This document shows positions 22,901 to 48,321 of a stretch of DNA of 64,000 bases, piece after piece (the stretch's first letter is position 1; each line of letters starts with the position of its first letter). The position numbers and the translations under genes are program-made. A model generated the notes under the pieces. The model was not told where the DNA came from and searched no databases. It worked only from the letters and a program-made list of their open reading frames with translations. The stretch comes from Chara braunii. Taxonomy: Eukaryota > Plantae > Charophyceae. The stretch is from positions 3,937,098-4,001,097 of the forward strand of contig BFEA01000040.1 of NCBI GenBank assembly GCA_003427395.1. The letters run 5' to 3'.

Positions 22901-25479
22901 ATGTTGACCGTTATCTCGGAAGTCATGGGAAGTCAAGTTCATAACCCCCCAGCAACCTCATGACCCGGTGCGTGTACGGCTGAGGAGACTCGAGCACAAG
23001 GAGATAATGAAGCCACTGTTGTGGCTACAACACAGCCAGGAAAGCTAATGTTGCAACCGCAACAACAACAACTCGACTTCCAACAACAGCCCCTCCTGCC
23101 CGCTTCAAGCAAGCATCACCAGCAAGGGCAGGACCAGCAACAACAACAGTTACTGTGCTTGCAGCAACCCCTGCCGAGCGCATCGGCCCTCGCCCGTCCT
23201 CCCCGCCACGTCACGCTGTCGTCGCAGGAGTTTAAACAAAAACCAAAACCAAACAGAACAACTCAAGAACGACGCAGAATATCCTGCATGCCGTCGAAAC
23301 GGGTGCGGTCGCATCGTCCCCTCGCCGCTCTGGCCGGGTGCGCCAGCTATACTTCCCGTGGTCCCCTACGATAGGATAGGTTCCCGCGGGGCATAAGCTT
23401 GCTTCCCTAAGGGGTTGTCACCACCCTTAGGGGCGTATCCCTACCGAGCTACCGACCCACATGCGAAAGCTTTTAAATGCAGTCGCAGAGGTAGGTCAAC
23501 CGAGGGCGTTTGCTCGTTCGCTGTAGTATAGATACGCTTAGTTAACGCCAAGCGGACCCGAACATCGTCCGTTCCTAGGGCGCTGATCTCCTAAGTACGA
23601 AGCGTACACCGGTCGATTAGGACGGTCTCAACCAAGCGTGAAACCCAAATAGTTATCCTAGTCCCTTAGACATATAGCCAAAGAGAATGATAACATTCAC
23701 AAACAATTACATCAAAAGAAGTCGACCGTAGTCAACAGGAATATATATCCCATCGAAAATGATAATTGAAAGAAACAATTCATCATTCAATAACACAAGA
23801 TCAGAATAAAATTCGACCACCGCGGGTCGCACACCATAAAACAATCAAACAACCGCCAACAACGAGTTGACTACTGATAATAACCTCAATGCAACCGACA
23901 AGGTAGTCNNNNNNNNNNNNNNNNNNNNNNNNNNNNNNNNNNNNNNNNNNNNNNNNNNNNNNNNNNNNNNNNNNNNNNNNNNNNNNNNNNNNNNNNNNNN
24001 NNNNNNNNNNNNNNNNNNNNNNNNNNNNNNNNNNNNNNNNNNNNNNNNNNNNNNNNNNNNNNNNNNNNNNNNNNNNNNNNNNNNNNNNNNNNNNNNNNNN
24101 NNNNNNNNNNNNNNNNNNNNNNNNNNNNNNNNNNNNNNNNNNNNNNNNNNNNNNNNNNNNNNNNNNNNNNNNNNNNNNNNNNNNNNNNNNNNNNNNNNNN
24201 NNNNNNNNNNNNNNNNNNNNNNNNNNNNNNNNNNNNNNNNNNNNNNNNNNNNNNNNNNNNNNNNNNNNNNNNNNNNNNNNNNNNNNNNNNNNNNNNNNNN
24301 NNNNNNNNNNNNNNNNNNNNNNNNNNNNNNNNNNNNNNNNNNNNNNNNNNNNNNNNNNNNNNNNNNNNNNNNNNNNNNNNNNNNNNNNNNNNNNNNNNNN
24401 NNNNNNNNNNNNNNNNNNNNNNNNNNNNNNNNNNNNNNNNNNNNNNNNNNNNNNNNNNNNNNNNNNNNNNNNNNNNNNNNNNNNNNNNNNNNNNNNNNNN
24501 NNNNNNNNNNNNNNNNNNNNNNNNNNNNNNNNNNNNNNNNNNNNNNNNNNNNNNNNNNNNNNNNNNNNNNNNNNNNNNNNNNNNNNNNNNNNNNNNNNNN
24601 NNNNNNNNNNNNNNNNNNNNNNNNNNNNNNNNNNNNNNNNNNNNNNNNNNNNNNNNNNNNNNNNNNNNNNNNNNNNNNNNNNNNNNNNNNNNNNNNNNNN
24701 NNNNNNNNNNNNNNNNNNNNNNNNNNNNNNNNNTTTTCACTCATGCATGACGCCCACAACCCCACTCAACCTTTCTCCTGAACATTCAAAGCAAAATGGT
24801 CAAGCAATGTGTGGGTGCACACAGGTGTGAAGGGAGTCTGAGTCGTCCACTGACGGACCTTGAGTGAAGTGGTGTCGAACGCGTTGTGGCTCCCTCAAGA
24901 AAGCCAAATGACATATACGCGTCACCGAAGAAACCGCAGTCCCAAGGTAAGTTTTGAACCAACTGATTGCCCTTGTCTGTTCCCGACTCGCAAGTTTCAC
25001 TCGCGGCAGTCCCAAGTGCGAAGATGGCAAGCCGCACTCGTCCCAAAAAAATCCACCGCGTCCTGCGTCGATCCCAACCGATCCCAGCCGGTCCCAAGTG
25101 GTCCCGCACTACTGCTAGTGTTGGGTAGTCTCATCTACAAAACATTAATTTCATATGCTGCATAAAAAATAAACCCGCCCGTCGCGCTCAGATTTCGTAT
25201 CGTCGCATGCCATCAACCGCCACCATGTCACGCTACTGTTGCCGTACACACCAATGGTAGCAGACCGTCACCAAGAAAAGCAGACGCCTCGCCAAAACAA
25301 AAAAAAACTTTCAGCGCCGTAAAAAAAAACCTCCACTGCCGCGCCGCACGTCCTACCATCGTGCCGCATTTCCATTGCGGTGTCGAACTCTCGTCGAAAA
25401 ATGGCAGCACGTCGTCGCTTTGTGCCCTGTCAAAAAAAAAAAAAAAAAAAAAAACGCCAGCGCTCCGCCATGCCGTACC

Positions 25480-25720
25480 AGCGTAGAAAAAAGAAGGCAG
25501 CGCCTCGCCGTGTTGTACCACCGCAAAAAGACAGCAGCGTTTCGCCATGTCGTACTACCGCAAAAAGACGGCAGCACTTCACTTCGTTATACTACTGTGC
25601 CATACTACCGCAAAAAGACGGCAGCACTTCGCCGCGTTATACTACCGTGCCGTCAAAACGACAGCGTCACTCTTCAAAACAAAGTGCTGCCAACCTGCCG
25701 TCAAAACGGCAGCGTAACTT
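25480..25720 (+). repeat. Imperfect tandem array in the LTR (CCGCAAAAAGACGGCAGCAC..TACTA); second copy at ~31660-31905
   Basis: Units of ~37-50 bp seen directly in both LTRs. Confidence 0.85.
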
Positions 25721-26531
25721 TTCAAAATAAAGGTGTCGGGCCGACGTCGTGGTATTTCGGCAGCATAACCCCACAAAAATGGGTTATGGTTGCCGAAAAT
25801 ATCGGTCGGCACACCTCCACCAGTTGTCGTGCTCCCCACTGCTCCTTGCCACGCTCCGCTGCCGCTCCTCACCATGATGTCGCAGAGTCCCACCAGACCA
25901 GTCTGCCAAGGGGTGGACCAGAGTGCTCCAGCCAAGGCTATGGTTGTCTCCTCCTTCGTCGCTCCGCTCATCTGCAGTCCTCCGGCTCTGCCGGCAGCAC
26001 TCCTGCCTCCTCTCAAGCACTCCAGCAATGAGGCAAGTGTGTTGTCGCACACAGGCAGCCGGAGGCAAGTGTGAGGCAACTGGGGGACAGCTGCCTCTTT
26101 TGTAGTGGCTAAGGAGGCCAGCAGCAGCCTCAGCTGCCCCCAGGAAAAATTTGTCACTCGCCTGGGCCCGTTGATATGAGGCAGATCAACGGACTGAGGT
26201 TGTCTCACCTCAGCCACACACCTAGGGTGGCAGTTGTACTCAACTGCCCCCGTCTTTTTTTCCCTTTTCCCTGCACTCAGCCCCGCACTTAGTGCAGATT
26301 CAGCGGGAAAATGGTTGTTTTCAACCAAGTTCCCCTCATTACCCCTTCATCTCCCCAGCCTCTGGCCTGAGTCACATTCAGGCCAGTTTGGCGTGTATCT
26401 GATCATAGCCGCGGCCACATTCGTGGCCATGGCTTTTTCATTTTTCCTTTTTTTTTTTCTTTTTTTTTTTTTTGTATTACGTCGGCTTTGCCACCGGTCA
26501 CGTCTCATCGTGGCCTGCTATGGGACATCGA

Positions 26532-26562
26532 GGTACAGACCCGGGTTCAAATCCCTACCGGG
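26532..26562 (+). pseudogene. tRNA 3'-half fragment (Gly-GCC-like; B box) in LTR A; second copy at 32713-32743
   Basis: GGTACAGACCCGGGTTCAAATCCC compared with plant tRNA-Gly(GCC) GGTACAGACCCGGGTTCGATTCCC (recalled sequence); the 5' half is not recognisable. Confidence 0.6.
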
Positions 26563-26615
26563 ATTTTGGACTATTTCTCGATTTATGCGTGTCATCCTTG
26601 TGCAAGGGTCAAGCT
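26563..26615 (-). ncRNA. U6: U6 3'-half fragment in LTR A
   Basis: Reverse complement AGCTTGACCCTTGCACAAGGATGACACGCATAAATCGAGAAATAGTCCAAAAT matches U6 from the AGC triad to the 3' end. Confidence 0.9.
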
Positions 26616-26854
26616 GCAGCCAAGCGGCCGTTCCCGGCTGTGAGATTCGATGATCTCGCGGCCGAGAATGGCCATGCTTCATGTTGGTGCAGTGGGCAGC
26701 TCCAAAGGAAAAGGAGCTAGCCCAGATTGCTTATCACCCGGCTCGATCCGTGAATCTGCGGGTAGAAGTTTGGTAGTTATACCTACTGGGCTACCTCCTA
26801 TCTCATATACGGATGAGAACAACCCACATATATGAAGGGTTACAAGGCCGTGCA

Positions 26855-27085
26855 GGCTGCCATCCAGGCCAGCGGACTTCTACTGCTTCAATCTGCGGCT
26901 GGCTGGTTGTTGGCTGATTGCTCGCTGATTGCTGGCCGACTGATTGCAGGCTGATTGCTGGCCGGCTGGCTGCACGCTGGGTGGCTGCAGGTTGGGTGGC
27001 TGGCTGATTGCTGGCCGACTATCTACAGGCTGGTTGTTGGCCGGCTGGCTGCACACTGGGTGGCTGCAGGCTGGGTGGCTGGTTG
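26855..27085 (+). repeat. GGCTG/GCTGATTGCTGG-rich degenerate tandem array; also at ~33075-33225
   Basis: Seen directly at the U3-proximal end of both LTRs. Confidence 0.85.
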
Positions 27086-29335
27086 GCGAGCCCTACGCTT
27101 GCCGCACCCTGCAGCTACCGTGCCATCAATTTCAGCCCTTGGTGCGGACGCCCGTGTCCTAAAAAAAAATAATAATAATAACTTCCTACTCACCTCTCGT
27201 CGCGGCCTCCGGTAAGGTCGCCACTTTGAACGCACTTAGGCCCTAAATCGTGCGGCCTACCGCCACGCGCCACCTTCTTAGGTAGGGTAGGTATAATCCT
27301 ATTAGTCCCTCGACCAAACTATTCCATAGCTCCGTCAGATGCCGTGATTAGTGGTCACACCACTGATTACCACTATTTCAGTCGGACGTCAGCGACGTCT
27401 AGCTTAAAAAAAAAAAGTTTAAGCCTACCGGTCATAGGTCTGTCTAGACAACTTTGGCAACGTCAGTCTCGTCAAGTCCTTCAATTCCACAAAAAAATCG
27501 GATAGCGTCCGACGTTGAAAACCCCGGCAAATACCCTTGTCAAGGTATTTGCCTTGACAACATTTCCGGACCCCATTGAACGACGTCCTCGTCGTTCACC
27601 ATCAAAATAGAATCAAGATCCTCATAAAATTTCCATGTAAAAGCAACGATCACAATACACAACAATTCCAACAATTGTTCGGAACTAAGCCGGAACTTTT
27701 AGAACAATATAACAACAAAATTGGATTTAGCGTCCAGGAGCCTCACTTAAAACTCTGGACATAGCCTCCAGAAGCCTTACAATTCAACAAAATACCACCA
27801 GATATAGCCTTTGGCGAGCCTTCCATTCCTATAACATATAAGTGGGTAAAATGATACCAGATTAGCCTCTGGCAAACCGTAATCAAACTTGGACCCAGGT
27901 CTAGCCCCTGGAAGCCTTCAATTTAGAGGAACTTTTTCAGAATGATCCCAACATCATCCCACTGGCGGCCACTCAATACAAACGTTAGTCTCTCTTGAAT
28001 GATGCCGGAAGCCCTCCGACAATACAAAAAAAATCACTCAAGCCAATATCCATTACTGTCACTACTATACCACAGTAATGTGCTAAAAAGAGTGAGCGAG
28101 GAATAGCCCCTGACAGACCTTTCAAAAAATTTTAATCATTCAAGAGAGAAATCATTCTTCCAAAGTCCCTCGACCAAGTTCGACATTACATTCGTCCTCA
28201 CTTAAGTCATCGTGCCCGATATTTCTGACACCCCTTGTGAATGCGTCGAGGAGTGGTGTAATCCGTATGAGCAAAGTATCTCGATATCAAGCCCTGCTTA
28301 AGATTCGAGCCTCGCCACATTCTTTCCGATTCCAATGTTTTCGATCTCATTAGTCTTTTGCGTGCAGAGTACAACTGCCCCACCTAAAATAACCGAGGCT
28401 GGCTAGACCCCGGTCATAGAGGTACGGTGACCATGCTTGACACGAGGTTAGGTAGCCACTCCTCCCCTTGAGGCAAACGATAGTCGTCTACCCTACAAGC
28501 ATCATTCTAATAAGACCTCAACACGTTCCTCCCTTTCAGTGATAATGTAGTCCTCCTTCCCTTAAACCACATAGGGTATAGAAGACAATATCCCACTATG
28601 GACCAGGAGCATAGCTCCGGCGTGGGCCTCACTACCACCTACGTAGCTCACAAATCCATCAGAAATTTATCGAGACATGATAACGCCTTCAAGACTTACT
28701 TAAAAAATATGCAAAAACAACAATACAACTTACAACAAATGCTTTCACACGAAATTTATAACGATCCAAGCAAAATAAATCTTCAACAATAAATCAGATG
28801 CCTTCAATCATAGAAATGCATCAATAAAACGGATAATCTCGAAATGAATGAGAGTCTGGGTAAACTGATGGATCGAAATATTCATCATTCTAATATCGGA
28901 CGTATGACTAAATAAATCTGCTAAATAATATCAAAAGGAAGTCAACGTTTGGTTGACAACTTTTCAAAATAGTTCTAACCAATAAGAATTTACGCAAGAA
29001 TTATAAGTAAAAATAATACCTCAAAGTTCATGATAAACGATATAATTAAGATATGGCACATGAAAACGGTAATTTTTAACACAATAACTCGTATATCAAA
29101 ACAATAACAAACTACGACACAATTAATATCAAGATATTATGAATTTAAACCTAACTTGAACGTTCAAAAATAACCAAAATAATCTCAAAAAAGAAATCCG
29201 GAAATAATTTCATCGAAACAAAATGATAATAAAATCAATCAATGAAGATAAAATAATGAGAATACGATAAATATATTCACTATAACATAAAATATCTGAG
29301 TGTCGTTCCGCTAGGGACAAAGGTAGTTTACCTTT

Positions 29336-29354
29336 ATCCCCGGCAACGGCGCCA
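29336..29354 (-). promoter_or_regulatory. Primer-binding site complementary to the tRNA-Asp 3' end
   Basis: Reverse complement TGGCGCCGTTGCCGGGGAT lies 2 nt after the LTR end ...CGACA; this PBS is typical of Athila-type elements. Confidence 0.9.
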
Positions 29355-29356
29355 CC

Positions 29357-32300
29357 TGTCGAGCTCATCGGCCCTCGCGCGGGCGAGGGCCCTCCCGGCC
29401 ACGTCACGCAGGAGTTTAAACAAAAATCAAAACCAAACAGAACAACTCAAGAACGACCCCGCATGTCGTCGAAACGGGTGCAGTCACGTCATCCCCGCGC
29501 CGCTCTGGTCAGGTGCGCCAGCTATACTTCCCGCGGTCCCCTACGACAGGATAGGTTTCCGCGAGGCATAAGCTTGTTTCCCTAAGGGGTTGTCACCACC
29601 TTTAAGGGCGTATCCCTACCGAGCTACCGACCCACATGCGAAAGTTTTTAAATGTAGTCGCAGAGGTAGGTCAGCCGAGGGCGTTTGCTCGTTCGCTGTA
29701 GTATAGATACGCTTGGTTAACGCCAAGCGGACCCGAACGTCGTCCGTTCCTAGGGCGCTGATCTCCTAAGTACGAAGCGTACACCGATCGATTAGGACGG
29801 TCTCAACCAAGCGTGAAACCCAAATAGTTATCCTAGTCGCTTAGACATATAGCCAAAGAGAATTATAACATTCACAGACAATTACATCAAAAGAAGTCGA
29901 CCGTAGTCAACAGGAATATATATTGCATCGAAAATGATAATTGAAAGAAACAATTCATCATTCAATAACACAAGATCATAATAAAATCCGACCACCGCGG
30001 GTCGCACACCATAAAACAATCAAACAACCGCCAACAACGAGTTGANNNNNNNNNNNNNNNNNNNNNNNNNNNNNNNNNNNNNNNNNNNNNNNNNNNNNNN
30101 NNNNNNNNNNNNNNNNNNNNNNNNNNNNNNNNNNNNNNNNNNNNNNNNNNNNNNNNNNNNNNNNNNNNNNNNNNNNNNNNNNNNNNNNNNNNNNNNNNNN
30201 NNNNNNNNNNNNNNNNNNNNNNNNNNNNNNNNNNNNNNNNNNNNNNNNNNNNNNNNNNNNNNNNNNNNNNNNNNNNNNNNNNNNNNNNNNNNNNNNNNNN
30301 NNNNNNNNNNNNNNNNNNNNNNNNNNNNNNNNNNNNNNNNNNNNNNNNNNNNNNNNNNNNNNNNNNNNNNNNNNNNNNNNNNNNNNNNNNNNNNNNNNNN
30401 NNNNNNNNNNNNNNNNNNNNNNNNNNNNNNNNNNNNNNNNNNNNNNNNNNNNNNNNNNNNNNNNNNNNNNNNNNNNNNNNNNNNNNNNNNNNNNNNNNNN
30501 NNNNNNNNNNNNNNNNNNNNNNNNNNNNNNNNNNNNNNNNNNNNNNNNNNNNNNNNNNNNNNNNNNNNNNNNNNNNNNNNNNNNNNNNNNNNNNNNNNNN
30601 NNNNNNNNNNNNNNNNNNNNNNNNNNNNNNNNNNNNNNNNNNNNNNNNNNNNNNNNNNNNNNNNNNNNNNNNNNNNNNNNNNNNNNNNNNNNNNNNNNNN
30701 NNNNNNNNNNNNNNNNNNNNNNNNNNNNNNNNNNNNNNNNNNNNNNNNNNNNNNNNNNNNNNNNNNNNNNNNNNNNNNNNNNNNNNNNNNNNNNNNNNNN
30801 NNNNNNNNNNNNNNNNNNNNNNNNNNNNNNNNNNNNNNNNNNNNNNNNNNNNNNNNNNNNNNNNNNNNNNNNNNNNNNNNNNNNNNNNNNNNNNNNNNNN
30901 NNNNNNNNNNNNNNNTTTTCACTCATGCATGACGCCCACAACCCCACTCAACCTTTCTCCTGAACATTCAAAGCAAAATGGTCAAGCAATGTGTGGGTGC
31001 ACACAGGTGTAAAGGGAGTCTGAGTCGTCCACTGACTGACCTTGAGTGAAGTGGTGTCGAACGCGTCATGGCTCACTCAAGAAAGCCAAATGACATATAC
31101 GCGTCGCCGAAGAAACCGCAGTCCCGAGGTAAGTCTTGGACCAACGTTTTGCCCAGTCTGTTCCCGACTTGCAAGTTTCACTCACGGCAGTCCCAAGTGC
31201 GAAGATGGCAAGCCGTACTCGTCCCAAAAAAATCAACCGCGTCCTGTGTCGATCCGAATTGATCCCAGCCGGTCCCAAGTGGTCCCGCACTACTGCTAGT
31301 GTTGGGTAGTCTCATCTACAAAATATTTATTTCATATGCTGCATAAAAAATAAACCCGCCCATCGCGCTCAGATTTCGTATCGTGGCATGCCGTCAACCG
31401 CCACCATGTCACGCTACTGTTGCCGTACACACCAATGGTAGCAGACCTTCACCAAGAAAAGCAGACACCGCATTAAAAAAAAAATAAAAAATTCAGCGCC
31501 GTAAAAAAAAAAAACCACTGCCGCGCCGAACGTCTTACCGTCGTGCCACATTTCCATTGTCGTGCCGAACTCTCGTCGGAAAATGGCAGCACGTCGTCGC
31601 TCTGTGCCCTGTCAAAAAAAAAAAAAAAAAAAAAAAACGCCAGCGCTCCACCGTGTCGTACCACCGTAGAAAAAAGACGGCGGCGCCTCGCCGTGCTGTA
31701 CCACCGCCAAAAGACGGCAGCGCTTCGCCGTGTCGTACTACCGCAAAAAGACGGCAGCACTTCGCCACGTTATACTACTGTGCCGCACTACCGCAAAAAG
31801 ACGGCAACACTTCGCCGTGTTATACTACCATGCCGCGAAAACGGCAGCGTCACTCTTCAAAACAAAGTGTCGCCGACGTGCCGTCAAAACGGCAGCGTCA
31901 CCACTCAAAATAAAGGTGTCGGGCTGACGCCATGGTATTTCGGCAACATAACCCCACAAAAATGGGTTATGGTTGCCAAAAATATCGGTCGGCACACCTC
32001 CACCAGTTGTCTTGCTCCCCACTGCTCCTTGCCACACTCCGCTGCCGCTCCTCACCATGATGTCGCAGAGTCCCACCAGACCAGCCTACCAAGGGGTGGA
32101 GCAAAGTGCTCCAGCCAAGGCTATGGCTATCTCCTCCTTCGTCACTCCGCTCCTCTGCAGTCCTCCGGCTCCGCCGGCAGCACTCCTGCCTCCTCTCCAG
32201 CACTCCAGCAATGAGGCAATTGTGTTGTCGTACACTGGCAGTCGGAGGCAAGTGTGAGGCAGCTGGGGGACAGCTGCCTCTTTTGTAGTGGCTGAGGAGG

Positions 32301-33226
32301 CCAGCAGCAGCCTCTGCTGCCCCTAGGCAAAATTCGTCACTTGCCTGGGGCCGTTGATATGAGGCAGATCAACGGACTGAGGCTGTCTTACCTCAGCCAC
32401 ACACTTAGGGTGGCAGTTGTACTCAACTGCCCCCCTCTTTTTTCCCCTTTTCCCTGCACTCAGCCCCACACTGAGTGCAGGTTCAGCGGGAAAATGGTTG
32501 TTTTCAGCCAAGTTCCCCTCATTACCCCTTCATCTCCCATGCCTCTGGCCTGAGTCACATTCAGGCCAGTTTGGCGTGTATCTGATCATAGCCGCGGCCA
32601 CATTCGTGGCCGTGGCTTTTCCTTTTTCATTTTTTTATTTATTTATTTTTTTTTTTATTACGTTGGCTTTGCCAACGGCCACGTCCCATTGTGGCCTGCT
32701 ATGGCACATCGAGGTACAGACCCGGGTTCAAATCCCTACCGGGATTTTGGACCATTTCTCGATTTATGCGTGTAATCCTTGCGCAAGGGTCAAGCTGCAG
32801 CCAGGCGGCCCTTCCCGGCCGTGAGATTCGATGATCTCGCAGTCGAGAATGACCGTGCTTCATGCTGGTGCAGTGGGCAGCTCCAAAGGAAAAGGAGCTA
32901 GCCCAGACTGCTTATCCCCTGCTCGATCCCTGAATCTGCGGGTAGAAGTTTGGTAGTTGTACCTACTGGGCTACCTTATATCTCATATAGGGATGAGAGC
33001 AGCCCACATATATAAAGGGTTACGGGGCCCAGCAGGCTGCCATCCAGGTCAGCGGACTTCTACTGCTTCAATCTGCGGCTGGCTGGTTGCTGGCTGATTG
33101 TTGGCTGATTGCTGGCCGACTGGCTGCAGGCTGATTGCTGGCCGGCTGGCTGCAGGCTGATTGCTGGCCGGTTGGCTGCATGCTGGGTGGCTGCAGGCTG
33201 GGTGGCTGGCTGATTGCTGGCCGACA
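29357..33226 (-). repeat. 5' LTR (copy B, includes N gap)
   Basis: TGTCG...CGACA inverted termini; abuts the PBS. Confidence 0.8.
32744..32796 (-). ncRNA. U6: U6 3'-half fragment in LTR B
   Basis: Reverse complement AGCTTGACCCTTGCGCAAGGATTACACGCATAAATCGAGAAATGGTCCAAAAT. Confidence 0.9.
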
Positions 33227-36200
33227 CCGCAACAAACCTGCGACGCCCAAATGCAAATGCAACAGCAAGGTGCAAAACAATACCTCGATGATTCACAACT
33301 ACAAATGCAAATGCAAAGTCGCGGTGCTTAACTGCAAGTGCAACAACAACCGCGGGTGTTGGCTCTGGGGCAGCAGGACCAAGTCAGGAAGGCACAAGCA
33401 CTACTGCAACTGCGACAACACCGATGAGCAGATGCAGCAAGCACAGCAAGATCATGAACCGCAACTGCTGCAGGCACAACAGCAGAACCAGCACCCACTT
33501 GACGCCCAAATGTTGATGCAGCAACAACAACATCACATGCTCGTTCAGCATAAGGAACAGCGAGAACAACGAGCTGACCAACAGTACCTGCCATACGCCC
33601 AAGCGGCCCAACAGCAGCAGCAATGCCTGATGCAGCAACAGCAACATGAGATCCAGCAACGCCATCGGCATGACAACCAAACACAAGCGGTGCGACAACA
33701 ACAACACTTGCAATCGCACCCACAGCTTCAGCAATACATGCAGGCTGATGCACCCGCCTGCATCGACACACCAGCAGTTAAATTACGGGGAAGCATCGTA
33801 CCAACCACAACAACAAACACAACAACATACAAATTGTGAGGATCAACTTTGATACCTCCTACAAGCGCAGCGCAGTACCATCAACAACAACACCAACAAA
33901 GCGAGATGCAACAACAACAAATCCTGCAACATCTCCACTTGCACTAGTAACAACAATTGTGCTGCCAACAACAGCTCATCCTACAACAGCAACAACAACA
34001 GTTGCAGATGTTGTGGCACCACAAGCATGAGAGACAGCAGCACCAACAACATATCCTTGCACTGAACGACATCACCATGTTCCGGATGTGCTCCCAGCAA
34101 CAAAAGAGGCTGCTCAGACATTGCAAGACTTGGAGACTTAGTCTACGGCCCCGGATGAGCCTTCAGTGCCCTTCACTGATGAAGCAGGACTGCAACCACG
34201 ACCCTTAAACAACAGACATTGAAATGTTTCAGGCCCCGGTCCACCCCTGCAGGATAGCTTCCCCCCCCCTCCCCCCGCTCCACTCTCGGCCAATGTTGAG
34301 GTTAAACCAAAACTGGTCTTCTTAACCAAATAAACCCTAACAAAAATCTTTTCTATTGCAGCAGAGGGATCACACGACAGGCTCAATTCCAAATATTGGG
34401 TGAAGGCTAAAGAAGTGTTGATGTTCAGTCCACGGGTACTGGCCACTGTGGAAAAATACAAGGATATACCATCGATTGACTGGATGGACGTGGGGGCGGT
34501 GATTGTACTAGTGGTCAATGAATTCTTGGACAAAATTAAGCAGTACGCTAACAAGCAATTTCCCCCAAACCAGCCCAAACAAAGCCCGGACCACCAGGCC
34601 CCCCACGATGAAGCTTTCCTTCATGAGGGGTTGGCGTGGCCTAAGCTCTTGGTCCAGGAACTTTGCACTACCCTGCATGGCCCGCCCACTGCTGCAGCCC
34701 CCACCCAATCACCAGAAAACCAGAGCCAGCTCCTCACATGGGAGGGGGGGCCACGACAACCGGCACAACCGATGCACCACACAACACTCACAGATACTGC
34801 TACACACACAACACTTACAGACACTGTCGTGGTCCCTGCAAACCGGAGTCGTCGTCCACGCAAAATTGAAATTCTGCATGACGATGATGATAACAATGAC
34901 ATGGCACTGTGTCTGTATGATGAGGCACCAGACGACCCTCCCCTTGGGAAACTGAGGGACCGGGTGAGACTCCAAGACCCTGGAGGCTCCCTGGTGCAGG
35001 CGCCACCTGGTGTCATCATTTTCCCTCTGGCCAGGCAAAGTGAAGGAGGACAGTGGATGTTGGGGTTCGAAACCCCCCCCCACCGACCCCCCCAGCAACC
35101 CCCGAACTCGGAGGGTCTCACTGTGGAAGGATGAAGGGGGAACCCCTCCATAGTGGTGATCCTCAAACGGCTCAAATACTGGCGTCGAGAGATGCAAACA
35201 GAAAGACTTTTGGGAGCCGTGCTGCCACACTCGTTGTCCTTTCCGACAGGAGTTATACCGGTCATACTACTCATGAACTCTAACGCCAAACCTCAAAGCA
35301 CACAGACTGCCTATACCTGGTTTAACCATCATGAGCTCATGGACCTCTCCACTGACCGGTTCAGGACCAACTTTGCATGGACACTACGCAGAGTGTTGTT
35401 CTTCATGCAAATCCTCTTGGAGGATAACATGTTAGAAGAACACAACCATTGGGATGACCCACCCTTCGTCCTTCCAATAAAGAACTTAGACTCAGCCGTC
35501 ACTCGGTCACCACGGAAGAACACGTGCAATCTCTTGTGTCTGCACAAGTGCCAGTAGACATGTTGAGTATCAGTGACTAACCTAATGAACCAGGAAGAAG
35601 CACTGACCCCACAGACTGCCCTGCCGCTCCAGTTTCTTGAAAGGACACACCGTCACACTGACCCGTACCCCACACTCACTGCACAACCCTCCGGCCTGCG
35701 AGGGCCCCATGCTGAGAATGCAACCCCCCCCCCNNNNNNNNNNNNNNNNNNNNNNNNNNNNNNNNNNNNNNNNNNNNNNNNNNNNNNNNNNNNNNNNNNN
35801 NNNNNNNNNNNNNNNNNNNNNNNNNNNNNNNNNNNNNNNNNNNNNNNNNNNNNNNNNNNNNNNNNNNNNNNNNNNNNNNNNNNNNNNNNNNNNNNNNNNN
35901 NNNNNNNNNNNNNNNNNNNNNNNNNNNNNNNNNNNNNCCCCCCCCCCCCCCCCTTCCTTGCTCGTTCTCCCCCCACTTAGGATGCAGCCCCAATGGGCAG
36001 TAAAACTGGCTCGAGTAGACATAAATATCCGCTCTCCGAATGTCAATGGCCTCATACAGGCCACACAAACAAAAGAGGATGCATCTGGGATATGCTCAGA
36101 GGCACAAACAAGAGGTTGTGGGCAGATGCAATCTACATTCAAGAAATGCACCTGCAAGATACGTCAGTACACACAGCAAAGGCCAAAGCAATCTGGTCAT

Positions 36201-47075: not shown

Positions 47076-48321
47076 AGCTCGAACGCCACTAAAGGTGGGT
47101 GAATGAGAGTTTGCGCCGCATGCTGAAATACCGCTACTTTTATTTTTATTTTTATTTTTTTACTATTATTTTTATTATTTTACTTATTTCGTGAGGTGGG
47201 ACTGAGACTTTGCCTCTGACCCTGGATCCAAGGTGCAGGTGTTGCGGCAAGGCCGGTGCCCTCCCACTTGCTGCAGCGACAGAACTGTCGTGACGGCCGA
47301 GCAATAGGCCGGGCGCTTGGGCGGCATCCATTCGGGACTGATTGATTCAGCAAGTGAGTTCATACACACTCCTTTGCAGATTCTTGACTTTGGCGATCAC
47401 CAGCCTGCAGTCTGTGCCATTTGATACCCGTCTGCTGTACGGGATTAGCGCACGGTTTGGCAGTAGGTGGAGAGAGGAACAGGGCGAACTAACCTGGACA
47501 GGGATTTGCGCGGGGTGTCTGCGGGGCGAGGGAGAAAGACGCAACGACGAGAAGGAAGAAGCTATGGCGGAAGTGAAAATTATACAGCCCCCCCGTTCCT
47601 TGGTGGAATCAGTGGGGGAGAGATTGCAGATAGGGTTTTTTGCATAGGGCGAATGCAATGGTAGGGTTATTTTAGTCAGAGAGTTGGTGTAGGAGGAGTT
47701 AGTGTAGAAAAGAGGTGTGCAGGAGATCGCGGAGATGAAGAAAAAGGGGAGTGGGAAAATGTGTATCTTGCTCGTTTCCGGACGGAATCGAGGGAGGGAG
47801 GACTCGAATCGGGGGTTTTCGGACCTGGTGACCCCGATTCTGAAGTCATGTTTAGTGGAAAGTCAGTAGATAGTGAGTTAGAAGAAAAAGGTGTGCGCAG
47901 AGGGGTCGAGGAGAAAAAGAGAGTGAGAGAGCAGAAGTAGAAACGACATAGCTCACCCGTTTCTCGACGAAAACGAGCGACGGAGGAACCTAAACGGGGG
48001 TTTTGAGGCGCTGCAAAGTGAATGGTCTTGACAAAATTGGATTTAGCCCTGCGGTCTGGCCGGTATGACCAGCAGGGGCTGCGCCCGAGAATAAGACTTC
48101 CTTTGGTGAAAATATGTAATGAATCTTTCAACTTTTTAAGAAAATATTCATTCTCATTTTACACATCTGATGAAACTAGTAGCAGGGCCATGTTTGTTTG
48201 GCTGATGTCCGTGCCACTTACAATGATCATCCTCATTTTATCGCTGCTCCTCGGTGATTGCGAATGATCCTAGTTGTGAAGACGGTCAGGTACGTTCATA
48301 CACTGAGGCTGCGCCCTGCGT

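Follow-up and report, generated by a model that had tools for sequence, protein, structure and literature searches.

A cassette of U6 and tRNA-like sequence in both LTRs of a Chara braunii retrotransposon, probably a U6 chimeric retropseudogene

The window analysed here, a stretch of 64 kb from Chara braunii, contains a true U6 snRNA gene and, at some distance, an LTR retrotransposon of 10 kb. Both LTRs of this element carry a cassette in which the 3' half of U6 is joined to a tRNA-like piece. The U6 gene and the features of the host element are the following.

4503..4603, minus strand: true U6 snRNA gene (Rfam, 106 bits), the reference for the U6 fragment
23172..33226, minus strand: whole LTR retrotransposon, 10 kb
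29357..33226, minus strand: 5' LTR, start TGTCGG, end CTCGACA, length about 3.9 kb
23172..27085, minus strand: 3' LTR, its TGTCGG start matched at about 27022, with 15-nt tandem-repeat similarity on to about 27085
29336..29354, minus strand: primer binding site TGGCGCCGTTGCCGGGGAT, complementing the 3' end of tRNA-Asp, 2 nt past the 5' LTR
27091..27112, minus strand: weak candidate polypurine tract, 16 purines in 22 positions (73%)
23164-23168 and 33229-33233: possible target duplication of 5 bp (GCAAC), separated from the TG/CA ends by 2-3 C

Self-comparison of the window yields two direct repeats at an offset of 6.18 kb (23170-23870/29355-30045 and 24734-27043/30916-33223; 91-94% identity). 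These repeats are true LTRs, because the pair is approximately 92% identical across 2.3 kb plus 0.7 kb, has the termini TGTCG...CGACA on the minus strand and adjoins a tRNA-Asp primer binding site. The latter is identical in 19 of 19 positions to the primer binding site of the FIDEL element, which was assigned to tRNA-Asp (PMC2844528). Both this site and the plant-type U6 of the window agree with a streptophyte host. With an LTR divergence of about 8% the element is old. Its interior (27086-29356, 2.3 kb) has no sense-strand open stretch longer than 59 amino acids and no Pfam match, and the element is therefore non-autonomous or decayed. The upstream ends of the LTRs consist of arrays of roughly 15-nt units of the GGCTGGCTGCAGGCTGATTGCTGGCC type (26905-27085 and 33074-33227); since the lengths of these arrays are unequal between the two LTRs, the start of the 3' LTR is blurred. 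Masked or unassembled runs of N occupy the same relative place in both repeats (23910-24733 in the 3' LTR and 30047-30915 in the 5' LTR).

Within the LTRs the cassette has the layout below, with copy A in the 3' LTR and copy B in the 5' LTR.

26825..26833, minus strand: TATA-type 9-mer ATATATGTG, copy A
26680..26824, minus strand: hairpin-rich LTR stretch, copy A, holding a T4 run at 26712-26709
26669..26679, minus strand: upstream direct repeat AAGCATGGCCA, candidate 5' target-site duplication, resembling U6 AGCAUGGCC
26616..26668, minus strand: segment X, a 53-nt stem (TTCTCGGC/GCCGGGAA and GAGAT/ATCTC), then a 15-nt linker
26566..26615, minus strand: 3' half of U6 snRNA in sense orientation, from the AGC region to GTCCAA
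26474..26565, minus strand: segment Y, beginning with the antisense tRNA-like piece and continuing for about 60 nt more
26436..26473, minus strand: A-rich tail, copy A, about 38 nt
26424..26435, minus strand: downstream direct repeat AAGCCATGGCCA, candidate 3' target-site duplication
32607..33013, minus strand: complete cassette, copy B
33005-33013, minus strand: TATA-type 9-mer, copy B
32850-32860, minus strand: upstream repeat, copy B
32797-32849, minus strand: segment X, copy B
32747-32796, minus strand: U6 part, copy B
32656-32746, minus strand: segment Y, copy B
32619-32655, minus strand: A-tract, copy B
32607-32618, minus strand: downstream repeat, copy B

An earlier reading made from the letters of the DNA alone (the sequence-only reading) had described a small-RNA cassette in both LTRs with its parts in this order, and the second copy at 32607-33013 bears it out. 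The same is true for the proposed sequence of some 60 nt beyond the tRNA piece followed by an A-tract, which lies at 26473-26436, and for the run of hairpins, which fold better than their shuffled counterparts (MFE z-scores of -3.0 and -4.5). No similarity above chance was found between X and Y when an inverted repeat or a common tRNA origin was sought. Segment Y has no other match within the 64-kb window, including the tail of a poly(A) element at about 41.2 kb; an origin of Y from the 3' tail of that element was rejected, as the two show no resemblance. Neither did the window hold any further copy of the complete unit of X, U6, Y and A-tract beyond the two LTR copies, and an exact-match scan of JGI metagenome contigs gave no match to the U6-Y junction.

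The U6 part is of U6 origin with certainty. Compared to the Rfam U6 model (RF00026) it gives local matches only, with 30.0 and 25.7 bits and about model positions 51-105 aligned, and the last 35 nt of the part in copy A are identical in 35 of 35 positions to the true U6 gene at 4509-4543. Thus the claim that the LTRs contain U6 from the AGC triad to its 3' end was correct, with the restriction that the opening 15 nt (AGCTTGACCC...) are degenerate and contain 3-4 mismatches. In an alignment to the U6 gene of the window, the 5' stem-loop, the ACAGAGA box and the terminal U-tract are all absent from the fragment. It ends with GTCCAA, directly joined to AATCCC, and the junction (26566/26565 in copy A) is the same in both copies. 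As judged from its sequence the fragment is not a U6 gene, because its score stays below the Rfam gathering score of 44 bits and because the 5' stem-loop, ACAGAGA and U-tail are missing.

The tRNA-like piece is shorter. Positions 26532-26548 of the plus strand agree in all 17 nt with the plant tRNA-Gly(GCC) sequence given in PMC6037947 and comprise the 3' strand of the anticodon stem, the variable loop, the T-stem and TTC. By our own rough estimate the probability of a 17-nt match to some tRNA within a stretch of 350 nt is about 1 in 10,000, and a B-box consensus is found at 26544-26554, antisense to the unit. The acceptor side and the 5' half show no match to tRNA-Gly in a by-eye comparison with the printed 71-nt sequence. 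The Rfam tRNA model gave no match even at E<=10 over the 261 nt scanned, and ARAGORN sees the tRNA part only at thresholds of 80%, at which it reports 54 matches in the window compared to 37 in a shuffle. A cloverleaf from this relaxed ARAGORN search, ending exactly at the junction, was rejected as noise on the same count (54 versus 37). We consider the tRNA-Gly fragment to be short but real in statistical terms, and the piece it belongs to is not a tRNA gene. Of the proposed T-arm and variable-loop segment the exact 17-mer and the B-box stand, while the tRNA model and the acceptor side do not support it. The search with Rfam models that had been suggested as a check therefore ended with U6 below the gathering score of 44 and nothing for tRNA at E<=10.

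To describe the abundance of these parts we used reads from two DNA runs of Chara braunii (X1 and X2); all depths given here are summed over contigs at 85% likeness and do not represent copy number. The U6 part (26565-26608) reaches a summed depth of approximately 45,000 and 96,000 in the two runs, compared to about 1,300-6,000 for most neighbouring LTR bins. In both DNA runs this 3' part of U6 is roughly 10-70 times deeper than most of the surrounding LTR. At 26564/26565 many contigs leave the LTR sequence, 56-146 per listed position; the two positions combined give 143 contigs for run X1 and 239 for run X2. The departing contigs read GTCCAA-TT and then poly(A), in U6 sense, which is the end of most U6 copies, and others run upstream as normal U6. 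Just 10-11 contigs extend into Y, and X is covered by 19-25. These exits indicate a very large number of poly(A)-tailed U6 retrocopies in the DNA, with the junction between U6 and Y as a minor, family-specific form. Poly(A)-tailed U6 ends occur in oligo-dT RNA reads too. Together this suggests a very large-scale retroposition of U6 in Chara braunii, and possibly the presence of adenylated U6 RNA.

Over X and Y the depth amounts to about 1,330-1,450 (X1) and about 760-820 (X2). Just upstream in the LTR it is 444-656 (X1) and 118-139 (X2), and downstream it is 4,000-26,000. Due to these unequal depths the LTR presents itself as a mosaic of modules differing in abundance. The occurrence of the cassette in many copies of the family, which had been put forward, is supported by the 10-25 distinct contigs that cover X and the tRNA-like part in these public DNA runs. 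Read joints connecting 26636 to 27056/27059 were examined as potential deletion variants and rejected: we take them for cross-matches of GGCTGCAG motifs in the linker with the LTR tandem repeats, as their sides measure only 20-27 nt. A different joint, in a single DNA contig, connects 27574 to 29337; the interior is missing there over 1,762 nt, as far as the primer binding site, and shorter deletion derivatives of the element thus exist. At the primer binding site and the adjoining LTR end (29259-29400) the summed depth is about 26,000-29,000 and greatly exceeds that of the remaining element. This terminus is common to many other elements.

The two copies of the cassette have drifted apart neutrally. 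Between them X, U6 and Y together are 92.3% identical, compared to 91.7% for the whole aligned LTR (Fisher p 0.89), and by part the values are 94% for U6 and 92% for Y. Among the predicted base pairs that changed between the copies (n=11), 7 have lost their pairing and a compensatory change occurs in only 1. The sequence-only reading had proposed to compare the conservation of the U6 and tRNA segments with the flanking LTR; this comparison was run, and it gives divergence at the background rate and no sign of selection.

We regard it as probable, with a real margin of doubt, that the cassette is passive cargo, namely a chimeric, poly(A)-tailed retrocopy, itself probably made by a LINE, which came to lie in an ancestral LTR and was amplified with it. 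The chimera would comprise the 53-nt stem of X, the 3'-terminal 50 nt of U6 in sense orientation and the 3' end of another RNA containing the antisense tRNA-Gly-like piece. Target-primed reverse transcription of the LINE type with template switching would most likely have generated it. It may then have landed, in a single insertion, in the LTR of an ancestor of the element at 23172-33226. As the LTRs are regenerated from one template in each cycle, the insert would thereby have been copied to both LTRs and to other copies of the family. The involvement of LINE machinery, the arrival by one insertion and the order of these events are what we infer. The fallback of the sequence-only reading, a neutral template-switch relic amplified together with the LTR, fits best with this.

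Several observations are arguments for a retrocopy. Both copies have an A-tract of about 38 nt and an abutting repeat of 11-12 nt. The U6 part, cut exactly before the U-tail, joins foreign sequence as in known U6 chimeras, and the combination of U6 in sense with tRNA in antisense orientation is that of mammalian LINE-1 chimeras. Poly(A)-tailed U6 copies are abundant in the reads, and the window itself provides a precedent at 7761-7841. Finally, there is no sign of selection, and the fragment is unusable either as U6 or as tRNA.

The direct repeat (AAGCATGGCCA/AAGCCATGGCCA) abuts the A-tail on one side and the 5' edge of X on the other. If the insertion is indeed nested, an empty site would carry a single AAGCCAYGGCCA. 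Shuffled sequences or random queries give an equally good match in about 5% of cases (p ~0.05, copy A) and copy B is weaker, so that the repeat is only suggestive of a target-site duplication. This marginal significance, and the weaker repeat in copy B, count against the retrocopy. On the same side stands that no empty site, a copy of the family lacking the unit, was encountered. The upstream repeat also equals U6 AGCAUGGCC, and it could be that a U6 sequence was split by X instead; X may then have been inserted into U6 sequence, or may stem from a second switch within it, and would not be the 5' end of the unit. It further counts against the retrocopy that its U6 is 5'-truncated and has no U-tail, unlike the known U6/LINE chimeras. 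An origin of the junction from a tRNA-primed cDNA of U6 was also considered and rejected, since it predicts a complement of the U-tail, which is missing, and would leave the A-tail unexplained.

The precedent just mentioned is a U6 retrocopy on the plus strand (7761-7841, within 7748-7854), 3'-truncated near position 85 of U6. A direct repeat of 13 bp, AAAAGCGGCGAGC on one side and AAAAGCCGCGAGC on the other, encloses it with 12 of 13 positions identical, and it is thus a LINE-type processed U6 copy with target-site duplication.

The main rival, which we nevertheless consider rather unlikely, is that no LINE was involved and the element's own reverse transcriptase patched co-packaged U6 and tRNA into the LTR by a non-homologous strand switch. 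Retroviral particles package U6 (approximately 1 per virion) and about 50 tRNAs, and template switching at microhomologies introduces patches of host RNA into retroviral genomes (PMC4997597). Copies of snRNA have also been reported in association with LTR elements (Giles 2004, as cited in PMC4476161). However, such a patch would leave unexplained the 38-nt A-tail right behind it and the flanking direct repeat, and poly(A)-tailed U6 copies are so numerous that some are likely to have landed in LTRs by chance.

We judge it unlikely that X, U6, Y and the A-tract form a composite family of their own, SINE-like or mobilised repeatedly, of which a member is nested here in an LTR. The sequence-only reading had named an independent SINE with its own target-site duplications, found mostly outside these LTRs, as an outcome that would speak against it. 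Part of this applies, as the unit ends in a poly(A) tail of its own and is bracketed by a candidate for a target duplication. The 64-kb window holds no other copy. X and Y are 2-6 times deeper than the LTR stretch just upstream, which would agree with additional copies elsewhere; yet this depth is a sum over contigs and not a copy number, the downstream LTR is far deeper still, and only 10-25 contigs cover X and Y. A SINE-like unit would also be expected to have a sense-oriented head with A and B boxes, whereas the sole B-box here is antisense.

Quite improbable, in our opinion, is a broader liaison in which U6-derived modules are kept in LTRs as helpful for packaging, nuclear retention or recruitment of reverse transcriptase, or in which the unit belongs to an undescribed charophyte family of U6 composite retroposons. 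If true, the hundredfold excess of U6 DNA in the reads would reflect an unusual relationship between U6 and retroelements in this lineage.

The weakest candidate is a functional part of the LTR, either a Pol III-type small RNA started from a U6-like TATA or a cis element for U6 3'-end proteins, U4 or tRNA annealing. The 9-mer ATATATGTG agrees in every position with the TATA upstream of the true U6 gene and occurs only 3 times in the window, at 26833-26825 and 33013-33005 on the minus strand and at 4635-4627, the latter 24-32 nt upstream of the true gene (4603-4503). There is no similarity around it between the LTR and the gene beyond the 9-mer itself, and being chosen after the fact the shared motif is weak evidence. 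In the LTR it is located more than 200 nt from the U6 part, compared to about 30 nt at the real gene. A Pol III transcript starting about 30 nt past the TATA would meet the T4 run at 26712-26709 before reaching X and U6, and no T-run follows the U6 or the tRNA part. The U6-like promoter that had been proposed for the LTR is therefore not borne out: only the 9-mer is shared, and the T4 run intervenes. The upstream element TCCCACATCG of land-plant U6 genes was tried as a promoter test and discarded, as its matches occur at chance frequency and none lies upstream of the true U6 TATA.

In oligo-dT RNA from two runs of Chara braunii most LTR bins contain 0-5 reads in either orientation, with the reservation that such libraries are blind to small non-adenylated RNAs. 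The only RNA peak near the cassette lies on the U6 part, where 95% and 84% of the placed reads continue into unlike sequence, which indicates an origin at other loci. The suggested functions (binding of U6 3'-end proteins, pairing with U4, annealing of tRNA) thus find no support: the fragment is internal and has lost the U-tail that 3'-end binding proteins need, it diverges at the background rate with pairs broken and not compensated, and no specific transcripts were seen. The cassette does not look like a working small-RNA gene. In spite of the identical 9-mer, the better-than-shuffled folding and the retention of the cassette in both LTRs and other family copies, we consider a functional role very improbable.

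Among known systems the cassette comes closest to the U6/LINE chimeric retropseudogenes, which, together with three-part chimeras, were reportedly described by Buzdin in 2002-2003 and Gogvadze in 2005-2007. In such chimeras the 3' end of U6 is joined to the 3' part of another RNA, and three-part forms occur (Doucet 2015, PMC4476161); in mammalian LINE-1 chimeras U6 is sense and the tRNA halves are mostly antisense (PMC13174262). The cassette shares with them the sense U6, its 3' end joined to the 3' part of another RNA, the poly(A), the multi-part form and the antisense tRNA piece, and where they have a duplication of 11-13 bp a candidate repeat of 11-12 nt brackets the unit here. It differs from them in containing only the last 50 nt of U6 without U-tail instead of a full-length U6 with some U-tail, in a partner that is no recognisable LINE, and in the tRNA piece between U6 and the tail. 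Furthermore, it lies within an LTR, which amplified it, and the host is a streptophyte alga and not a mammal.

The host-RNA patches made by retroviral reverse transcriptase (review PMC4997597), and the snRNA pseudogenes beside LTR elements (Giles 2004), are similar in that U6 and tRNA sequence lies inside an LTR element. Those patches come with neither a poly(A) tail nor a target duplication, whereas the present unit has the tail and a candidate for the duplication. SINEU families also place snRNA-derived sequence within a short, poly(A)-tailed retroposed unit; their heads, however, derive from U1 or U2 and stand at the 5' end of the element (Kojima 2015, PMC4494074), while here it is the 3' half of U6 in an internal position. 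The Cassandra TRIMs with their 5S rRNA resemble our case in having a segment derived from a Pol III RNA in both LTRs of a non-autonomous element. In Cassandra this is a near-complete 5S with internal promoter boxes, conserved across many plants. The Chara element instead carries a promoter-less half of U6 and a 17-nt tRNA core, both drifting neutrally, in LTRs of about 3.9 kb that are not those of a TRIM. The cassette does not make these LTRs ones of the Cassandra type, in which a Pol III gene is functional; it is probably a U6 chimeric retropseudogene. We found no report of U6 in Chara repeats in the literature.

On its own the cassette would be an ordinary by-product of reverse transcription, a one-off chimeric retrocopy which was multiplied simply because it landed in an LTR. 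The wider pattern of abundant, often poly(A)-tailed U6-derived DNA in the reads of Chara braunii merits a survey.

Some minor observations were made along the way. An ATG open reading frame of 54 amino acids runs over X, U6 and the start of Y (26518-26682 and 32699-32863, minus strand) and is open in both copies; it is taken as a coincidence. A homologue search with a plus-strand open reading frame of 139 amino acids spanning the cassette gave no match. Both LTRs contain a pure run of 23-24 A (25432-25454 and 31614-31637, plus strand, opposite to the element strand) amid repeated GC-rich and A-run units; this run may be a simple repeat or may have been the tail of a further nested retrocopy. 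At 47310-47461 on the minus strand, far from rDNA, lies a fragment of large-subunit rRNA of 150 nt (Rfam 56.7 bits, model positions 1187-1339), which may represent another reverse-transcribed scrap of host RNA.
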